From the NCBI GenBank assembly GCA_001600695.1, contig BCKQ01000001.1, positions 2,090,615 to 2,154,614 on the forward strand: a DNA stretch of 64,000 nucleotides, written 5' to 3'. Positions 3,885 through 47,634 of this stretch are shown one piece after another. This DNA is from Ascoidea asiatica JCM 7603. Lineage: Eukaryota; Fungi; Ascomycota. The first letter of the stretch is position 1, and each line of letters starts with the position of its first letter. Below the pieces are notes generated by a model. The model saw only the letters and a program-made list of their open reading frames with translations, had not been told where the DNA came from and searched no databases. The translations under genes and the position numbers were made by a program.

Positions 3885-5708
3885 TTAAGCAATCATGATT
3901 TCTCTATTGAAATATTCATTACTTTCATTTTCATTAGCTGTCAAATATTCACTATTTATTGAAATTTTTGAATCATTAGAATTATTAAATTGAATTTGAA
4001 CTTTTTTACATTTAGAATTTAAAATTATTAAAAGTTCTTTATCATCTTTATTATTTTCAACATCTTTTTCAATTATATTATCATACATACTTGTACTTGA
4101 ATTCTCACTTTGATTTGTACTAAAATATCCATTATCATTATAATAATTAAAATTATTTAATTCAATTTCTTCTTTATAAATCCTACTTATATTTGAATTT
4201 ATATCTTCTTTTGCATAAAACATATATGGATCTGAATTTATATTTAAATTTGGAATTGGAATTAAATTCATTGGAATAGTTGGAATAGTTGGAATAGTTG
4301 GAATCATTGGAATCATGGGAATTATAGGAATTATTGGAATTATTGGAATTTGTTGAAAAATCATATTCATTGGAAAATATGGTAATGAATTTCCATTTGT
4401 ATAAATTGGCATTGGATATAAATATTCTTGTTCTTGAATATTAACATTACTATTCTCATATCCATATCCATTTTCATATCCATATTCATATCCATTAAGA
4501 TTATTATAATCCATTTGATATTCCATATAATTATCATTTAAATAAGTTTCTAAATATTTTGATTCAATTTTAGATTCTGAAATAATTGGTGTTGAAGTAT
4601 CTTGAATATCAATATCTAAATCTAAATCTAAATCTAAATCTTTATTTTTCATATCTAAATTAGATTCATTTTCAAAATTATACAAATCTTTTTTCTCTTT
4701 CAATTCATTTTCATTTTCAGTTTTAATACCTAAAATTGTTTTTAATTCAAATTCTGCTTTTTTTTTAAATTCTTCTTTTTCTTTCAATAATTTCTTTTCT
4801 TTATTAACCCAATTCATTAATGATTCAAATATTGTATTAATAATATAATAATTATTATCTCTATTTGATATATGACTTATTGAATTATTTTTAAAATTAG
4901 AATTAAAATCAAAACTTGAATTGGAACTTGAATTACAACTTGAATTAGAACTTGAACTTGAAGAAGAACTTAAATTAAAACTTGAACAAGAACTTAAATG
5001 AGAACTTGAAAAACAATTTCTTTTGGAATATTTATAATTTCTTCTTTTAAAATAAATTTCATTTGAAATAATATTTAATTCTTTCCATTTAATTTCTTTA
5101 ATTTCATTTCTACATTTTGGTTCAAATTTAAAATTTTCTGGAATATTTTTAATTAAATAAATTTTATAATTTTTACCTTTAATATTTTTTTCAATAAATA
5201 AATCTTTATTAATTAATTTACTTACATCAAAACCAATTTCTTCAAAAGTTTCTCTAATTGCACAATTAATATCTGTTTCATTTTTAGAAATTTTACCTCT
5301 TGGAAAACTCCAAGATTTTGATTCTGTACCTTTAACTAATAAAATTTTATTTAAATTTGAATTAAATAATGCTGTACCTCTAACAGGAATTTTAGATTTA
5401 TATTCACCAAATTTTAATAAAGCAAAATTTAAATCATTATAATTATAATTTTTTAATAATTTTAAAATTATTGGACATTTTTTAATAATTTTTATTGAAA
5501 ATGTTTTTAAAATTAAATTTGGTAAATTTGGATTTAAATTTCTTATAAAATCTTTATAAAACCAACGAGCTTCTTCAATTTGAAAAAAAATTCTTTCTGG
5601 TGTTGATAAATCTTCTGGTGGACAATTAATTATAAATCTTACAATTAAATCATCTATTGTATCATCAAGAGTTTTATAACAAAAACCATCTTTTAAAGGA
5701 ATTGACAT
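3885..5708 (-). CDS. DCP2: mRNA decapping enzyme catalytic subunit Dcp2
   Basis: Box A (DDLIVRFIINCPPEDL...FFQIEEARWFY) and an intact Nudix box (WSFPRGKISKNETDINCAIRETFEEIGF). Confidence 0.93.
   Translation of the reverse strand: MSIPLKDGFCYKTLDDTIDDLIVRFIINCPPEDLSTPERIFFQIEEARWFYKDFIRNLNPNLPNLILKTFSIKIIKKCPIILKLLKNYNYNDLNFALLKFGEYKSKIPVRGTALFNSNLNKILLVKGTESKSWSFPRGKISKNETDINCAIRETFEEIGFDVSKLINKDLFIEKNIKGKNYKIYLIKNIPENFKFEPKCRNEIKEIKWKELNIISNEIYFKRRNYKYSKRNCFSSSHLSSCSSFNLSSSSSSSSNSSCNSSSNSSFDFNSNFKNNSISHISNRDNNYYIINTIFESLMNWVNKEKKLLKEKEEFKKKAEFELKTILGIKTENENELKEKKDLYNFENESNLDMKNKDLDLDLDLDIDIQDTSTPIISESKIESKYLETYLNDNYMEYQMDYNNLNGYEYGYENGYGYENSNVNIQEQEYLYPMPIYTNGNSLPYFPMNMIFQQIPIIPIIPIIPMIPMIPTIPTIPTIPMNLIPIPNLNINSDPYMFYAKEDINSNISRIYKEEIELNNFNYYNDNGYFSTNQSENSSTSMYDNIIEKDVENNKDDKELLIILNSKCKKVQIQFNNSNDSKISINSEYLTANENESNEYFNREIMIA
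4268..4349 (-). repeat. 9-bp tandem repeat encoding (IP[I/M/T])n in the Dcp2 tail
   Basis: ttggaatag/ttggaatca/ttggaatta units; protein IPIIPIIPIIPMIPMIPTIPTIPTIPM. Confidence 0.85.
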
Positions 5709-8546: not shown

Positions 8547-8915
8547 ATTTAAAAAAAAATTGAAAAGTAAATCAAATCAGATACGAAAAAACTTTAATAT
8601 ATATACAGTATACTATATAGATTATGATAAAATGAGTTTATAAAAAATTTGTATACGATTTTTATTAGTACCGATAGATAAATGATTTAAATAATTTTTT
8701 TCAAATCAGAGTCAAATTATGTATGTAATAATTGAGATAAGATTTAATTTGTATCGTATAAATCATTTAATGGAAAGTTTTTAATGGAAAGTTTTTTATG
8801 GAAAGTTTTTAATTGAAAAGATTTTAAACGAGAAATAATTTAAGAGTTGATTTATAAAAAAAAAAAAAAAAAATTGGGTGAAATTAAATCTAAAAGAGTA
8901 AAAAAGACCGAGAAA

Positions 8916-26161: not shown

Positions 26162-29100
26162 TCAAAGTTTAAATTGAATTTCTTTGAAAAATGAAAATGG
26201 TTTTGCTGAAGTTGGAGCTTTAGAAAGTGGTAGCATTGCTCTAAATCTATCAATGTCCTTTATTTCTTTCAAAAAAATGCTTGGTTCTGTAAGATCTTCA
26301 ACGATATCCTCTTCTTTACTAGCTTCTTTAATATCTTCTTTATTAGTCTGTTCAATATCATCTTTATCTGGAGAGAAAACATGTATACAAAAATGGGATG
26401 AGGTTTCTTTATTTAAAAAATATTGATCATAGAAATTGATCAAATCTTTTTTGGTGATCTCTAATCGAGTATCTTTTTCATTTAAAATGGCGATTACTCT
26501 TTGTACTGAAGTAAAATCATAAGTATTATTTAAAATTTCTTCAATATAAAAAGAAAATTCAGAATCCATATTTCTGAAGTTTAGAGGTTTATGAGGAGCA
26601 GCCTTTAGCATAACAATCAATGAAAGTTTTTTGAAATTAAATTGTTCATCAGTTATATTATAAATCAATTCTTTTAGACTATTTGTTAAAAAATGGATTA
26701 CTCTTGATTGTAAATATTTACAATCTTTATGACTTTGAATAACAATTTTATGACCCAAAGTGGAACGAGTTATTCGAAGTCCGGAGGAAACAATATAACC
26801 AAGCTGTTCTTTAGTTCTTAATTGATTAAATGCAGGTTCTTTTATAAATTCATTAATCAATGCAAGAAGAATCATGTCTTTTGCTTTGGCTATATCAGAA
26901 TCATTTAATTCCGAAAGATTTAGAACTTTGAAATTGTGTTCATCTATATTGATTTTTGACATACTTCTATACAATTCGTTAGCATCAGCAATAAACGTGA
27001 AAAAATCAATTGAGGAATTGGAAGTTTTATTTTCTTTTAAAGGCATTTCAACATAGGAAGAGTTTCCTTTGATGAATAAATGAGAACGATAAACATTATT
27101 AATTTGATTAAAAAACAATGGAGCAACATTTGAATCAATTTTTTTCAATTTATTAAAAAAAGAATCATTTAAAATTTTTTCAATTTTATTTGTTAAATGA
27201 TAATTTTTATTTTCAAAATTCCCATAAAGTGTAACATCAACAAATACTTGATGAAATAATTGATTCACGAAGTTATTAAAATATTCTAAATTTATGAATT
27301 CATTTCCATTTATATTTTCTTCCATAATTTTTGAAAGTTTTTCTTTTTCACTCCAAGTTTGATCATGAATTATATTTCTAAAATACGATGAAGATTGTCT
27401 ATAAGGTTCTTTAAATTGAAAATTTCTATACGATTTTTTATGTATTTCTTTAATTGTTTGAAATTTTTCATTATTATTAATTAATTTATTATCTTTAAAA
27501 TTAATAATTTCTTGTAAAATTTTTTCAAAACATGAAATTAATTTATCATTATAACCATCCATTGAAATTGAAAATCCAGTAACTGACCATCTAATATTTA
27601 AATCTAAATTAGCTAAACTTGCAAAATATATTAAATCATTCAATTGAAGATTTAAAAATTTTATAAAAAAAGTAGTCATAATTTGATTTGTGATTGAAGA
27701 ATTTGGAATTGGAGTTTTAAAATTTAAATGAATAAAACCTTTTGGTTGAGAAAAAAAATCATCAGGTTTAAACCAAATATTATAAAATTTATTTGAAGTT
27801 ATTAAAGATGGAATTCTTTTTAATTTTGATGATAAATCTTTTTTTTCATTAAATATTTTAAAATTTTCTGGAATTAAGAAATTTTTTTCAGGTATATGAA
27901 AATTTTCATTTAATTTACAATTTTTTAAATTTGATAAAAAATTATCATCTAAATCATTTAAAGAATAATTAGTTTGATAAATTTCTTCAATTAATTTTAA
28001 ATCATTTATTGAATATTCATTATTAGCTAAAAATAATATAAAATTATCTGGATTTAAATAAGATAAATAATTTTTAATAATTTTAAAATCAAATTTAGTA
28101 TTAAATCTATAATTAAAATCTAATAAATTTTTTTTTTTATTAATTTTATTAAAATGTAAATTTGTTGAAAAATTTACAACAGTATCATCATCATCAGAAA
28201 ATTGTTCTTTATATTTAAAATCAAGTTTTGACATTTGATCTAATTCATCATTAATTGATTTTAAAGAAGATTCATCTAAATTTGATAACATTTTAATATA
28301 TTGAAAAAAATTAGTTAAAATTTCATTAATTATATTAACATTATCAAAAGCAAATTTTGTTAAAAATATTGTAGTTGTGAAAACAAAATTATTTTCACTT
28401 ATAATATATTGACTTGAAGATAATGAAGTTACCCAATTTTTATTAAATTTAAAATATTTTAATAAAGAACCTTTAGTTTCATGACCAATTAAATGAGAAA
28501 TTGTTTTTAAAGGATTATAATTTAAATGAATAAATTGAGAACCTGGTAAGAAAAAAAGAAGTTTAATTGATTTTGTTTCTTTTATTGGTTTATATTTTAT
28601 AATTCTTTTTGAAGGATATTTAGTTAAAATTGAATTTGAATTATTAAAGTTTAAAGAAGTTGGTAATGGATTAATTTGAATATTTTTATAATTTTGTAAA
28701 ATATTTAAATCAATATTTTTATTTTGAATTAAAGAAAAATATTCAATAACTTTTGAAACTAAATTATTTTTATTAATATTATCATTAATATCTAAATTTG
28801 TTAAAATTGATAATTTCATTATATTTGAAGAATAATGAATATTATACCAATTAATTAATTCATTTCTAATATTTAAATTTTTTTTAATTGGTAAAATTTT
28901 TAAAGTATTTAAATTACCAGTTGAAAATTTATGATATGGATGATTTTGATTAATTAATTTTTTTAATAATTGATTAAATTTTCTTGAATCATTTTGTAAA
29001 TTTTTATTATTTTCATTATTTACAGCATTTATTTCTCTATCTTGACAATTTTTTAAAAATAATGGATCAATAAAAAATCTTGAAAATTTATGTAATAAAA

Positions 29101-29869
29101 TTATTAAAAAATTAGAATCTATAGTAAAATAATAATTTGTATGTTCAGTTGAAGTAAAAGCATTTGAATTACCAGAATGATTTGATAAAAATTTTTGATA
29201 ATCATTTTCATCTGGAAATAAATTTGTACCCATAAATAATAAATGTTCACAAAAATGAGCTAAACCTTGAAAAATTTCAGGATCTTGAAATGAACCAATA
29301 TTTATATCTAAAGATACAGAAGATTTTAAAGCTTGTTTATCATGAATAAATAAAATTTCTAAATTATTATTATTTAATTTTATTAATCTATAATTACGAT
29401 TATCTTGAATTGGTTTATTTAAGTTTAAAAATAATTCTGAATATTCACCTTGATTAATAAATTGATTATAATCTTTTGATTTAAATTGTAAAGAAGATTC
29501 ATTTAAAACTTCAATAGATTGATCTTGTTCTTGATCTTGATTTTGATTTTGATCTTGATCTTGATCTTGATCTTGATCTTGATCTTGATCTTGATCTTGA
29601 TCTTCAATTTCAGATTTAAAATCTTTAAGTACCATTTTTTTATAAAAAGTTTTATTTGAAATTGAAAAAGTCAAAGGATTAAGAGGAGAAGTTGTAAAAT
29701 TTCTTGAATTATTATAACAATTAGAATAACAACTATAAGAATATTTTAAATTTTTAAAATTAATAATTGAATATTTAGAAAATATATAAATGATTTTTAT
29801 TCCATTTAAATTTTGTTTAGATTTTAAAATTATATTTTGAATAGGAGTTAAAAGCAGATATGAATACAT
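26162..29869 (-). CDS. STE23: M16A metalloendopeptidase (Ste23/insulysin), copy 1
   Basis: GLAHFCEHLLFMGT (HxxEH), NAFTSTEHTNYYF, REINAVNNE, KFSTGNLNTL and EPAFNQLRTKEQLGYIV. Second in-frame ATG at 29635; C-terminus QFKL. Confidence 0.9.
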   Translation of the reverse strand: MYSYLLLTPIQNIILKSKQNLNGIKIIYIFSKYSIINFKNLKYSYSCYSNCYNNSRNFTTSPLNPLTFSISNKTFYKKMVLKDFKSEIEDQDQDQDQDQDQDQDQDQNQNQDQEQDQSIEVLNESSLQFKSKDYNQFINQGEYSELFLNLNKPIQDNRNYRLIKLNNNNLEILFIHDKQALKSSVSLDINIGSFQDPEIFQGLAHFCEHLLFMGTNLFPDENDYQKFLSNHSGNSNAFTSTEHTNYYFTIDSNFLIILLHKFSRFFIDPLFLKNCQDREINAVNNENNKNLQNDSRKFNQLLKKLINQNHPYHKFSTGNLNTLKILPIKKNLNIRNELINWYNIHYSSNIMKLSILTNLDINDNINKNNLVSKVIEYFSLIQNKNIDLNILQNYKNIQINPLPTSLNFNNSNSILTKYPSKRIIKYKPIKETKSIKLLFFLPGSQFIHLNYNPLKTISHLIGHETKGSLLKYFKFNKNWVTSLSSSQYIISENNFVFTTTIFLTKFAFDNVNIINEILTNFFQYIKMLSNLDESSLKSINDELDQMSKLDFKYKEQFSDDDDTVVNFSTNLHFNKINKKKNLLDFNYRFNTKFDFKIIKNYLSYLNPDNFILFLANNEYSINDLKLIEEIYQTNYSLNDLDDNFLSNLKNCKLNENFHIPEKNFLIPENFKIFNEKKDLSSKLKRIPSLITSNKFYNIWFKPDDFFSQPKGFIHLNFKTPIPNSSITNQIMTTFFIKFLNLQLNDLIYFASLANLDLNIRWSVTGFSISMDGYNDKLISCFEKILQEIINFKDNKLINNNEKFQTIKEIHKKSYRNFQFKEPYRQSSSYFRNIIHDQTWSEKEKLSKIMEENINGNEFINLEYFNNFVNQLFHQVFVDVTLYGNFENKNYHLTNKIEKILNDSFFNKLKKIDSNVAPLFFNQINNVYRSHLFIKGNSSYVEMPLKENKTSNSSIDFFTFIADANELYRSMSKINIDEHNFKVLNLSELNDSDIAKAKDMILLALINEFIKEPAFNQLRTKEQLGYIVSSGLRITRSTLGHKIVIQSHKDCKYLQSRVIHFLTNSLKELIYNITDEQFNFKKLSLIVMLKAAPHKPLNFRNMDSEFSFYIEEILNNTYDFTSVQRVIAILNEKDTRLEITKKDLINFYDQYFLNKETSSHFCIHVFSPDKDDIEQTNKEDIKEASKEEDIVEDLTEPSIFLKEIKDIDRFRAMLPLSKAPTSAKPFSFFKEIQFKL
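29520..29603 (-). repeat. (GATCAA)n hexamer repeat encoding (DQ)n in Ste23 copy 1
   Basis: gatctt repeats on the + strand. Confidence 0.9.
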
Positions 29870-30189: not shown

Positions 30190-30201
30190 GAAACAATGAG
30201 A

Positions 30202-30282
30202 CGACATTGGCAGGACTCGAACCTGCGCGGGTAAACCCAAAAGATTTCTAATCTTTCGCCTTAACCACTCGGCCACAATGCC
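30202..30282 (-). tRNA. tRNA-Ser(AGA), intronless
   Basis: GGCATTG/CAATGTC acceptor stem, discriminator G, A box TGGCCGAGTGG, anticodon arm AAAGA-TTAGAAA-TCTTT, variable arm GGG-TTTA-CCC, T arm GCAGG-TTCGAGT-CCTGC. Confidence 0.97.
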
Positions 30283-31809
30283 AGTCATGTGATAAGTTAT
30301 ATTAGAATTATTTAGTAGTCATCAAAGTTAAAAAGGTGCTATTTTTAATCAATTTCCTTTTTTGGTTATAAAGCCGCTGTAATATAATCCACGACATTCT
30401 TTCTGAGTGATTTGTATTCGGTGTAGCACTTGGCCTGCTGCGAACATCTCAGCACTGGCCCTCCTTGCCCTGATGTATGAAATTTAAGAGCCCTGTTTTC
30501 TAAAAGATAATAAAACAATCTCCAATCACTGATTTTTAATGTTGATGTTATTGAAGACAGTTTTTCTATTGAATATATTCAGAACAAAAAAAAACAAATG
30601 GAAGTTATTTTTAATGGAATATGAAATGCAAAATCCATTTCATTTTCACTTTTGCCTTCAGTTTCAATGCTTTCTTTCATATTCAATTGAAAACCATATG
30701 AGAAATTATTTTTTTTGATCATTTCAGATTAAATGAATAAAATATATCTCTAATAATCTCCCAAAATCTTTAAAAGAATACAATCTAAAATCAAATTAAT
30801 TCATAAAATTACATCATTTTATTTATTTGATTTTTTATTTTTTTCTTCTTATCCTATGAATTATATCTTAGGAGTTCGTTACCCTTGAGTTTATAATATT
30901 AAAATATTATTTTCTCCAATCAAAATATTTTTACTCATTTATCTAATGATGGCTTTAATTTATTATATTATATAATGAATCTTATTGATCAGAAGCTTAT
31001 CAATTCATTTATTTAAATTCTCATTGAATTATTTTTTATTCTTTCTTCTTTTGATTTATCCTTTTATCATTTATCAAATCAATCTGATCTTTTTCATCAG
31101 TTGCTGACATTTTACCTGTCTCTTATTGGTCCGCTGTTGAACCCCGTTAAAATTTATAATTTATATTCTTTATTTAAAAGTTTAAGTTACAAATTGAGTG
31201 TCAAGTCAAATCAAATTAATATTTATTAAAAAAAAAAAAAAATTATGCGTAACACACATAATATTATACTAATACTTATTTTTTTTTTTTTTTTTGAATT
31301 TTGAATTTTACTCGTTTTTTTAAAAAAAAATAAAACTTTATACAATATTTCTTTCTAGTAGTTCGATTACTAGCAAAAAAAAAGTTAAAATCAATTAAGA
31401 GAATAATTTTTTAACTAATTAATTACTCAATTAATTACATTTTTTATTACATGTTTTATTACAAGTTTTAATTTATAGTAATGATTGGTAATTTCATTTT
31501 CCTTCTTAGAAACAATTCCTTGAATATAAATATCCTCAAGGTTAAAAATTTTATACAATAATAATCTTGTAATTATTTTAAATTCAAAAATAATATAAAT
31601 ACCCTCTTGATTCTTCATATTTTAAAATTTTGAAAGATTTTTTTATTCTTTGCTTATCAATCTTCAACTCATTTCAATTAGATTAAATTCAATCCAATCC
31701 AATTCAATTCAATTCAATTTCTATTATAATAAACTATTATATTATTTCCCTAAAGTTTTAAATCATAACTTTTAACAGTTTAAATTCAACTAAATTAAAT
31801 TATTTCAAA

Positions 31810-31908
31810 ATGCCTTGTGCTTGTGGAGAAAAACCAGTTTGTGACTGTGGTGGTGCTTTCAGTAATGGTTCAAAAGAAGGTGAAGTTGACTACACTCATA
31901 AACACTAA
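31810..31908 (+). CDS. 32-aa Crd2-type metallothionein-like peptide MPCACGEKPVCDCGGAFSNGSKEGEVDYTHKH
   Basis: Below the ORF-track cutoff. GC-richer coding patch with AAAATG context, two CxC motifs, and a GEVDYT tail matching the GETDFT tail I recall for Candida Crd2-family proteins. Confidence 0.8.
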   Translation: MPCACGEKPVCDCGGAFSNGSKEGEVDYTHKH

Positions 31909-33155: not shown

Positions 33156-34367
33156 ATGTTAGATTACAAAAAAGATATTGTTTCTCAATCTTTTAATTCA
33201 AAGACTATGAATAATTCTGTGAAAGAAGATACTTCTACTTTATCTCAAAAAATGATAAGTGCTTTAACAGGTTCTTTATTAACATGTTCAATATTAACTC
33301 CATTTGATGTGGTGAGAATAAGATTACAACAACAGCATTTGATTTCATCAACTTTAGCAAATAATTGCTCTTTACCAAAAGATAAATGTTGTCAAGGTCC
33401 CACTTTATTTTGGATAACTCCAAGTTCAAGTAATGAATATTGTTCAACCGCTGAAATAAATCAAACTTCAAAAATAAGATTCACTGGAACTTTCAATGCT
33501 TTTCAATCAATTTATAAAAATGAAGGTTTACCAATTCTTTGGAGAGGTCTTTCTTTATCTTTAATAATAGCTGTACCTGCAAATGTATTATATTATACAG
33601 GTTATGAATATTTAAGAGATAATTTCCCTTTAAATACTTCTCCAACTTTTAATCCTTTAATTTGTGGTGCAATTGCAAGAGTAATTGCTGTAACTTCAAT
33701 AGCTCCTTTAGAACTAGTCAAAACTAAATTACAATCAATACCTGCTTCTTCAAATAATTCAGAATTATTAAAAGATTTATTATTAGATTCTTATAAAACT
33801 ACAAAATCTCAAGGATTTTCTTCTTTATTTAGAGGTTTAGAATTAACTTTATGGAGAGACGTTCCATTCTCCGCAATATATTGGTTTTCTTATGAATTTT
33901 GTAAAAAAAGTTTTTCAAAAATGTCTTATTTCAATAATAAATCATCAAATTCTCAAATTAATAAAACTTCAGAATCTTCTAAAAATATTTTTAATCAATC
34001 ATCAATATTAAATTCAGATTCAACAAATCAAGTTTTTTTAAAATCTTTTTTATCTGGTACAATTTCTGGTACTATAGCTGCTTTATTTACAAATCCTTTT
34101 GATGTGGGTAAAACAAGATTACAAGTATCTGTTGATCCAGATAATTCTGATTTAAGATCAAATCCTTTGATCAAATCCAAAAATAAGTCACTCAAACATA
34201 AACCTAAAGAACCAATGTTTCGATTTTTATCAAATATAGTCAAAGAAGAAGGATTTTCTGCTTTATATATTGGTATAATACCAAGAGTTTTAAAAATCGC
34301 TCCTTCTTGTGCAATAATGGTATCAAGCTATGAACTTGTTAAGCACTTTTTTTTAAATCGCAACTAG
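33156..34367 (+). CDS. MTM1: Mitochondrial carrier Mtm1 (SLC25A39/40 family)
   Basis: Three Px[DE]xx[KR] repeats (PFDVVRIR, PLELVKTK, PFDVGKTR), Cys-containing first matrix loop, TLWRDVPFSAIYW and KIAPSCAIMVSSYE. Confidence 0.9.
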   Translation: MLDYKKDIVSQSFNSKTMNNSVKEDTSTLSQKMISALTGSLLTCSILTPFDVVRIRLQQQHLISSTLANNCSLPKDKCCQGPTLFWITPSSSNEYCSTAEINQTSKIRFTGTFNAFQSIYKNEGLPILWRGLSLSLIIAVPANVLYYTGYEYLRDNFPLNTSPTFNPLICGAIARVIAVTSIAPLELVKTKLQSIPASSNNSELLKDLLLDSYKTTKSQGFSSLFRGLELTLWRDVPFSAIYWFSYEFCKKSFSKMSYFNNKSSNSQINKTSESSKNIFNQSSILNSDSTNQVFLKSFLSGTISGTIAALFTNPFDVGKTRLQVSVDPDNSDLRSNPLIKSKNKSLKHKPKEPMFRFLSNIVKEEGFSALYIGIIPRVLKIAPSCAIMVSSYELVKHFFLNRN

Positions 34368-45810: not shown

Positions 45811-47634
45811 TTATTCTTGATTAACCTCAACTTGAACTTACTATTTTTCATATGTTTAGTAATTTCGTTGTGTAATTTAACTTTAACATGTTTCTTTTAA
45901 ATTTCAATTCTTTTATTTCTTATCATCCCTCATAAAATCTCAAATGTGGTTCTTATTTTTAATGAAACTAAATACATTTTTATAAACTTTTTTTATTATT
46001 TGTATAAACTATTTTTTTACTGCCAAAAGGGTTACTTGATAAGGCTCAGTGGTATAGTTAAATCTATTTCTACTAAAGTTCATAAAAATATTATATTACG
46101 ATAATTTTGTGATTTGTTTAATAATATTCCACGCTATTCTATTAAATTGAACAAAACAATTATATTTCTCAGAATTTAAAAATAAGATATCTGCACTCGG
46201 CTTTTAATTCTATAATCATTAATAATTGAAACTTTGTTAGATTCTTTGAGATATTGAGATTCTTTAAAATATAAGTGATTGATTCTCTTTTATGATGGTT
46301 GACTATAAATAACTTTTAATTCTTTTTTGATTTATTGTTTCTCTTTTTTGCATTATTATTACATCAAGGCAATAATGATAAAGTTGAATGGATTAGTATA
46401 TTTTTTATTATTTTTATGGCTATTTCTGATGAATAAAAAAAGTTTATAGATGTAATAATAGGATCTAAGTTATAAAACCTAAAAATATGGGGTAGCGAAA
46501 TTTGGTAAACTTTTCTACGAAGTTTCAAAAATTGGGATTGTAGCTGCTGCAACAGATTTGATTTTTCATTTGCATTACAGATTAAGCACAAACAATTTTG
46601 CCAATAACTGAGAATTAAAAAAAGTATAATAATCTTACTAGAAAGGTTAGACTTAGTTGTTGTCAATAAAACTACTTGCTGATTATTCTCATTCTATCAA
46701 GCATAAGCAAATACTTTTGATCTTTTTTGAAGAATCGAGGCAGTTAGTTATTAATGCTGTTTCTTTTTTCTCAGATATTGTATGGTGCGTTGTTTCATTA
46801 AAACCATCAAAGTTGATTATTGGAAATTTTACGAAAAGGAAAAAGAGCTAAAAATATGTTCAGGGTCATTAAGGGAGGGCTGAATCTGAAATAAAAAATT
46901 AATGTGAAAGTAAAGATTTTTTTCTGTTTTCCTGAATGTTCAATTATATTTCCACTTACTATAGTCTATTTTGAATTAAATATATTTGTTACATTTGCAT
47001 TTTGGTTTTGAATGCGTATATGGGCTTGATTTGAGCCATTGACCTAAATTATTCGACAAATATAAATACTTTTCAAGAAAAAAAAAAGAGCATTTATTTT
47101 AGATTGAAGTTTATATGAAGAAGGCTGAAAACTAGTTATATATTTTTTATTAATTCTTTTCTTGTAGCTTAGTAAAAGTTTTTGCAGCTTAGATTTGATT
47201 CTGGTTGATTTTCAGCTAGAGCTTTACTATAAATTTTCAAACAAATTTATTATTTGTTTTCAATAGAAATCTCTTAGTACCGGATGAAATATTCATGCTT
47301 TCTTTGAGCATTTTTTAATTGAGACTTTATTCGTTTATTCGCTTTTTCGTTTTTTCGTTTTTTCGTTTTTATGTGCGGATATTTAAGTTTCTGAATATTC
47401 TAGCTTTTTTTGAAAATGGGCTAATAAATAAATATTTAGACAAAATTCAATGAAAGAAATACCAAAAAATTTATTTTCTTCCTTTCATCATTTTGCTTTA
47501 TTTACAATTGAATTTCTCTTTATAGAGTGCTTTGAAAACTCGATTATATTCAAAGAAGCTCAACCAAAATCATCTCTACGAGCGCTATAAAGGTTAATCA
47601 CATTTTAAAAAGGCTCTGATACTTTAAATTGAAA

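Follow-up and report, generated by a model that had tools for sequence, protein, structure and literature searches.

A miniature Crd2/CmtA-type peptide gene conserved in two species of Ascoidea

Can a peptide of 32 residues with four cysteines be a genuine member of the Crd2 family, and what would it do for the cell? The question is raised by a 99-nt ATG–TAA ORF (mini-Crd2) at positions 31810–31908 of a 64,000-nt stretch of the Ascoidea asiatica JCM 7603 genome (the window; coordinates are those of the window and of its forward strand unless a minus strand is given). A sequence-only reading had taken it for a miniature of Candida albicans Crd2, composed of the last Cys module and the conserved tail. 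The function of the Crd2/CrdA/CmtA proteins is called unsettled in several papers: deletion mutants show no copper phenotype, and CmtA, whose expression depends on iron, co-purifies with GrxD. A natural version that has kept four Cys and the tail for ∼100 My shows what selection retains.

A short, single-exon gene beside STE23

The ORF, its position and its translation are as that reading gave them: a single exon of 32 codons without CTG, in a 2.87-kb gap (given earlier as ∼2.9 kb) that extends from tRNA-Ser(AGA) (30200–30283, minus strand) to MTM1, a mitochondrial carrier gene (33156–34367). The GC content is 40%, against 16–20% in the flanks. The remark that C-ending codons are rare in this window was borne out, as five of the seven F, D, Y, H and N codons of the ORF end in C compared with 5–16% among the long ORFs of the window (P = 3e-5, in a post hoc test run after the codons had been flagged); this bias suggests high expression. 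The gene is single-copy in the A. asiatica genome (20.3 Mb in 71 contigs searched). Exact look-ups gave no identical entry on any record searched. Protein searches were blank with phmmer against 1.84 billion representatives and in the Atlas, the PDB, which held no relative, and viral contigs, but at 32 residues they have little power and do not show absence; a word search with the 48-codon stop-to-stop frame was likewise blank, as expected at such a length. The AlphaFold model (pLDDT 56) is uninformative.

A. rubescens carries an ortholog, a 38-residue ORF without a called gene (L046:9359-9475(-)) that is divergent from STE23 and matches mini-Crd2 at E = 3.6e-9 in a search of 6667 six-frame pieces. 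The two peptides are identical at 20 of 32 residues, and both ORFs begin Met-Pro in a CAAAATG context and encode all four Cys and the GE[IV]D[FY]T tail; the species split ∼100 My ago (PMC6041473). The alignment of 32 codons holds 8 identical pairs, 12 synonymous differences and 12 replacements; nothing is alignable in the DNA that flanks the two ORFs. STE23, encoding an M16 peptidase (26162–29869, minus strand), is the divergent neighbour in the window as well, and is adjacent to SUB2 at both loci, the two together serving as the synteny anchor; the best matches of the window's MTM1 and STE23 are those of A. rubescens (56–57%). The tRNA gene, which lies between STE23 and the ORF in the window, is absent at the A. 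rubescens locus, and the adjacency to MTM1, rejected as a functional link for this reason, is not kept there. No Crd2-like ORF was found at the STE23 loci of Saccharomycopsis, Cyberlindnera and Pachysolen. That mini-Crd2 is a genuine gene, conserved in both Ascoidea and encoding a minimal peptide of the Crd2/CmtA type, we regard as almost certain.

The neighbourhood has some features of its own. STE23 has a paralog ∼33 kb away on the same strand (G000:C1:2153886-2157164), and A. rubescens likewise has two, ∼16 kb apart with other genes between; because both species carry the pair, the duplication is older than their split. The N-terminal extension of STE23 contains a (DQ)n run, encoded by a perfect hexamer repeat at 29540–29600. 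In A. rubescens an ANTH/I-LWEQ (SLA2-like) gene (L011:11703-14756) lies between MTM1 and MDM10, where the window has none.

The ORF could instead be the final exon of a spliced Crd2 of normal length, or a relic that is not expressed. A mould homolog (L036) is indeed spliced, and a CAG stands 34 nt 5' of the mini-Crd2 ATG. Against this, an in-frame stop lies 16 codons upstream (31759–31761), with neither Cys nor Met in the open frame between, and the Met-Pro start in its CAAAATG context is found in both species. A profile of the N-terminal half of Crd2 found no exon upstream of either Ascoidea ORF, no branch point lies within 300 nt 5' of either ATG, and the 525 nt between the STE23 start and the A. 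rubescens ortholog are free of CxC, CC and CxxC in all sense frames. The relic reading is disfavoured by the synonymous substitution pattern. We consider both versions very improbable. The earlier view of a single-exon miniature with no Cys-coding exon upstream thus stands, and mini-Crd2 is, as judged from these sequence comparisons, short by nature and not a fragment of a longer spliced protein.

Upstream, a candidate TATA box, TATAAATA, lies at 31594–31601 (−216), with a second copy at 31525–31532, and the A. rubescens ortholog has TATAAATA at −264; these are consensus matches only. A (CAATT)n-rich tract at 31663–31719 is probably 5' leader; at three of seven other loci checked in the genome, the tract directly precedes an ORF of > 250 residues, on its sense strand. 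Such tracts occur at ∼40 places in A. asiatica, several directly 5' of a sense-strand ORF. A check for Ace1/Cup2-type sites found GCTG cores upstream of the ORF in both species and no alignable common site; the A. asiatica genome encodes two copper-fist factors. An identical 12-mer with a GCTGA core occurs near both orthologs (31098–31109 and L046 ∼8893–8904), upstream in one species and downstream in the other, and was set aside at an E of 0.47, which is chance level. No iron-responsive, CCAAT-bipartite or Yap promoter motif was found to be shared between the two species.

A reduced variant of the DUF7871 family

Is mini-Crd2 then a Crd2 protein? Against Pfam PF25277 (DUF7871) it scores 15.9 bits (E 0.014), matching profile positions 73–105 of 105 only, and the A. 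rubescens ortholog scores 19.6 bits (E 0.001) on the last third only. Both are below the gathering score of 29.5 bits, whereas the four Crd2 orthologs tested, to which mini-Crd2 is 42–47% identical over ∼30 residues, score 52–57 bits and are all above it. A profile of eight real Crd2 proteins, a check suggested with the sequence-only reading, did return a match, giving mini-Crd2 21.7 bits, a score that none of 5000 shuffles reached, the best of them standing at 14.0; among the 6667 six-frame pieces the Crd2 profile matched the two Ascoidea peptides at E 1e-4 and 2.8e-6. Crd2 proteins were retrieved by a degenerate DNA pattern scan of metagenomes, which returned full-length yeast proteins, one of them (P0241) identical to C. 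albicans Crd2; of the spliced mould homolog the last exon alone was used, the joined model being left out. Because the scan pattern was built from the ORF and the known Crd2 tail, this retrieval is not independent evidence. Independent support for homology comes from the Pfam match and from the end primer of A. nidulans crdA, which encodes ETDFT (PMC5447758).

Ten columns are invariant across 10 sequences: the four Cys, G6 and, in the tail, G20, G24, E25, D27 and T29. With the Pfam match, the Crd2-profile scores and the shuffles, they uphold the proposed homology. The Cys module (C3, C5, C11, C13; 31816–31848) has the spacing CxC-x5-CxC, not the CxC-x6-CxC first read, and A. rubescens keeps all four Cys together with G6, E7, K8, P9 and D12. 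The tail, G-x3-G-E-[VIT]-D-[FY]-T (residues 20–29; 31867–31896), aligns within DUF7871 positions 75–105 and stands a few residues before the stop, as is typical of DUF7871; its GE.D[FY]T part is, as had been noted, conserved in A. rubescens and in Crd2-type proteins. The HKH end (31897–31905) fared differently: A. rubescens ends in GKF, so that the Lys alone is common to both, and neither a role for this end nor its His residues as ligands can be maintained.

Metallothioneins are extremely rich in Cys and nearly devoid of aromatic residues, bind several d10 ions in metal–thiolate clusters, and are metal-inducible through Ace1/Cup2-type sites. Mini-Crd2, with four Cys in 32 residues (12.5%) and both Phe and Tyr present, does not have such a composition, whereas two Cys-dense ORFs of the same genome reach 26–28%. 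The earlier judgement that four Cys are too few for bulk chelation is supported. Of the description of Crd2 as a copper metallothionein the homology holds, and the label itself is doubtful for the family (PMC9072627, PMC5447758, PMC7333239). Because both the Pfam cut-off and the multi-module architecture are missed, mini-Crd2 is, by sequence, a reduced Crd2/CrdA/CmtA variant and not a standard member. Three queries found no full-length Crd2 in the A. asiatica genome, though the same searches missed the miniature too, and the ASK1 region of this genome is without Crd2. A 9.4-kb segment that includes ASK1 is present twice near scaffold ends, 99.9% identical (G000:C9:672491-681900 and G000:C11:1-9398; L054, L055); this is probably an assembly overlap, or else a very recent duplication. 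None of the papers searched names both Ascoidea and metallothionein.

Crd2 has three CxC..CxC modules with spacings of x5, x7 and x7. Mean alignment scores of mini-Crd2 are 77 and 77 for the first module plus tail, and 72 and 77 for the last module plus tail; the last module, as originally proposed, is therefore one of two options that score about equally. A deletion between two CxCG repeats of Crd2 would give 37–38 residues. The two Cys-dense ORFs (G000:C13:45248-45337, 29 residues with 8 Cys, and 46030-46113, 27 residues with 7 Cys) also bear on origin. The first of them is 77% identical in DNA, over 56 nt, to the N-terminal half of mini-Crd2, and the first 14–16 residues of mini-Crd2 score 58 and 69 against it, compared with 40–50 against any single Crd2 half. 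Common descent, a chimera or convergence of short Cys motifs may account for this likeness. The pair (L051:4249-4338, 5031-5114) lies downstream of a JmjC gene. Long forms occur in both groups sampled, moulds and the Candida clade, which would make reduction in Ascoidea the parsimonious direction.

A proposed carrier with a docking tail, or a small metal buffer

Two-thirds of the Cys have been lost in both Ascoidea, and four Cys and the Cys-free tail have been kept; across the family the tail is near-invariant while the number of Cys varies from 4 in mini-Crd2 to 12 in Crd2 and 16 in CrdA. We give an even chance to the reading that mini-Crd2 comprises one four-Cys metal or Fe–S site and a docking tail, and is not a bulk chelator. 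The four Cys would form a single site that takes an Fe–S cluster, a Zn or a few Cu(I), the acidic-aromatic tail would dock a partner protein, and the peptide would carry or hand over the metal centre without acting as a bulk store; longer members of the family would add further Cys modules to this design. A function of its own for the tail, as the sequence-only reading proposed, is plausible. A carrier is favoured over a store because Cys were lost with the tail kept, because Cys-dense ORFs are encoded elsewhere in the genome, and because of the work on CmtA and CrdA. CmtA of A. fumigatus was recovered together with the monothiol glutaredoxin GrxD, chiefly under iron excess (PMC6762210), a link from one pull-down in one mould that may be indirect and is not mapped to the tail. 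GrxD is described as an Fe–S chaperone, cmtA is repressed in iron starvation, and the metallothionein status of CmtA, doubted by the authors, ‘remains to be shown’ (PMC9072627). Deletion of crdA gives no copper phenotype in A. nidulans or F. graminearum (PMC5447758, PMC7333239). By transfer from CmtA, the likeliest partner would be the cytosolic monothiol glutaredoxin (Grx3/4, GrxD); the specific version with an Fe–S site and Grx4 as partner is a tentative one that we think unlikely. Several points count against the carrier reading: the supplements to a proteomics study of C. albicans Grx3 yielded no Crd2, overexpressed CmtA gives partial protection from copper, and metals induce CrdA in two moulds (PMC5447758, PMC7333239). 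Nor do the two Ascoidea have an iron-responsive promoter motif in common.

Alternatively, mini-Crd2 might be a plain, minimal Cu/Zn buffer, perhaps oligomeric, its four thiolates binding a few Cu(I) or one Zn and its tail serving only stability or turnover; it would then work at low capacity and constitutively beside inducible metallothioneins. The CxC motifs, the codon bias and the N-terminal likeness to the 8-Cys ORF are in keeping with this, as are the partial rescue by CmtA and the description of C. albicans Crd2 as a copper metallothionein whose expression seems copper-insensitive. We nevertheless think a buffer possible but somewhat unlikely, for Cys make up only an eighth of the peptide, the loss of two-thirds of them was tolerated for ∼100 My while the Cys-free tail stayed, better chelators (8 of 29 and 7 of 27 residues Cys) are encoded in the same genome, and moulds tolerate copper without their orthologs. 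A role in thiol redox or sulfur handling, the two CxC pairs cycling as disulfides or persulfides with glutaredoxin as reductant, is distinctly unlikely: CxC spacing is the typical arrangement of metal ligands, and the description of GrxD as an Fe–S chaperone also speaks against it, although contact with a glutaredoxin would be compatible with redox chemistry too. An antioxidant role has been proposed for CrdA (PMC5447758), and cmtA ranks with the transcripts that fall most in a mutant of the sulfur regulator metR (PMC3757043).

Should the carrier reading hold for all of DUF7871, mini-Crd2 would be the functional core of the family, and the family a small Fe–S-binding partner of cytosolic monothiol glutaredoxins, with a four-Cys cluster site and a GE.D[FY]T docking tail, and not a copper metallothionein, a generalization that we offer as speculative and improbable at present. 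Mini-Crd2 shows that family members can escape both annotation and the Pfam cut-off, and similar unannotated miniatures may exist in yeasts thought to lack Crd2. It is short enough for chemical synthesis, and so provides a minimal object for testing Cu against Zn against Fe–S binding, and for binding of a partner by the tail.

Comparison with known systems

Mini-Crd2 is probably an overlooked miniature of a known family and not a new kind of system. Like C. albicans Crd2 (P0241; PF25277) it combines, in a single exon, a CACG...CxC module with the G-x3-GE[TIV]D[FY]T tail behind it. However, Crd2 has 76 residues, 12 Cys and three modules, and the Ascoidea peptides have 32 and 38 residues, four Cys and one CxC..CxC module; the spacing is x5 in mini-Crd2 and x7 in the last Crd2 module, and the fifth Cys, before the tail in Crd2, is Phe in both Ascoidea. 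The Ascoidea locus is linked to STE23, whereas that of Scheffersomyces Crd2 lies at ASK1–RGA1. Aspergillus CrdA/CmtA and Fusarium FgCrdA share the ETDFT-type tail (PMC5447758, from the primer), and the last exon of the spliced mould homolog L036 ends GEIDFTGKK, but CrdA, with 109 residues, 16 Cys and seven CxC, is ∼3 times longer; GrxD binding and iron regulation are reported for CmtA alone among these proteins. The Cys-dense ORFs of the A. asiatica genome are similar in size to mini-Crd2, and the 29-residue ORF shares the MP-x-x-CACG-x-K-x-x-CxC start, where it agrees with the A. rubescens ortholog at 10 of 15 residues; in contrast to mini-Crd2, their 7–8 Cys are spread over the full length and they are without the GE.D[FY]T tail.
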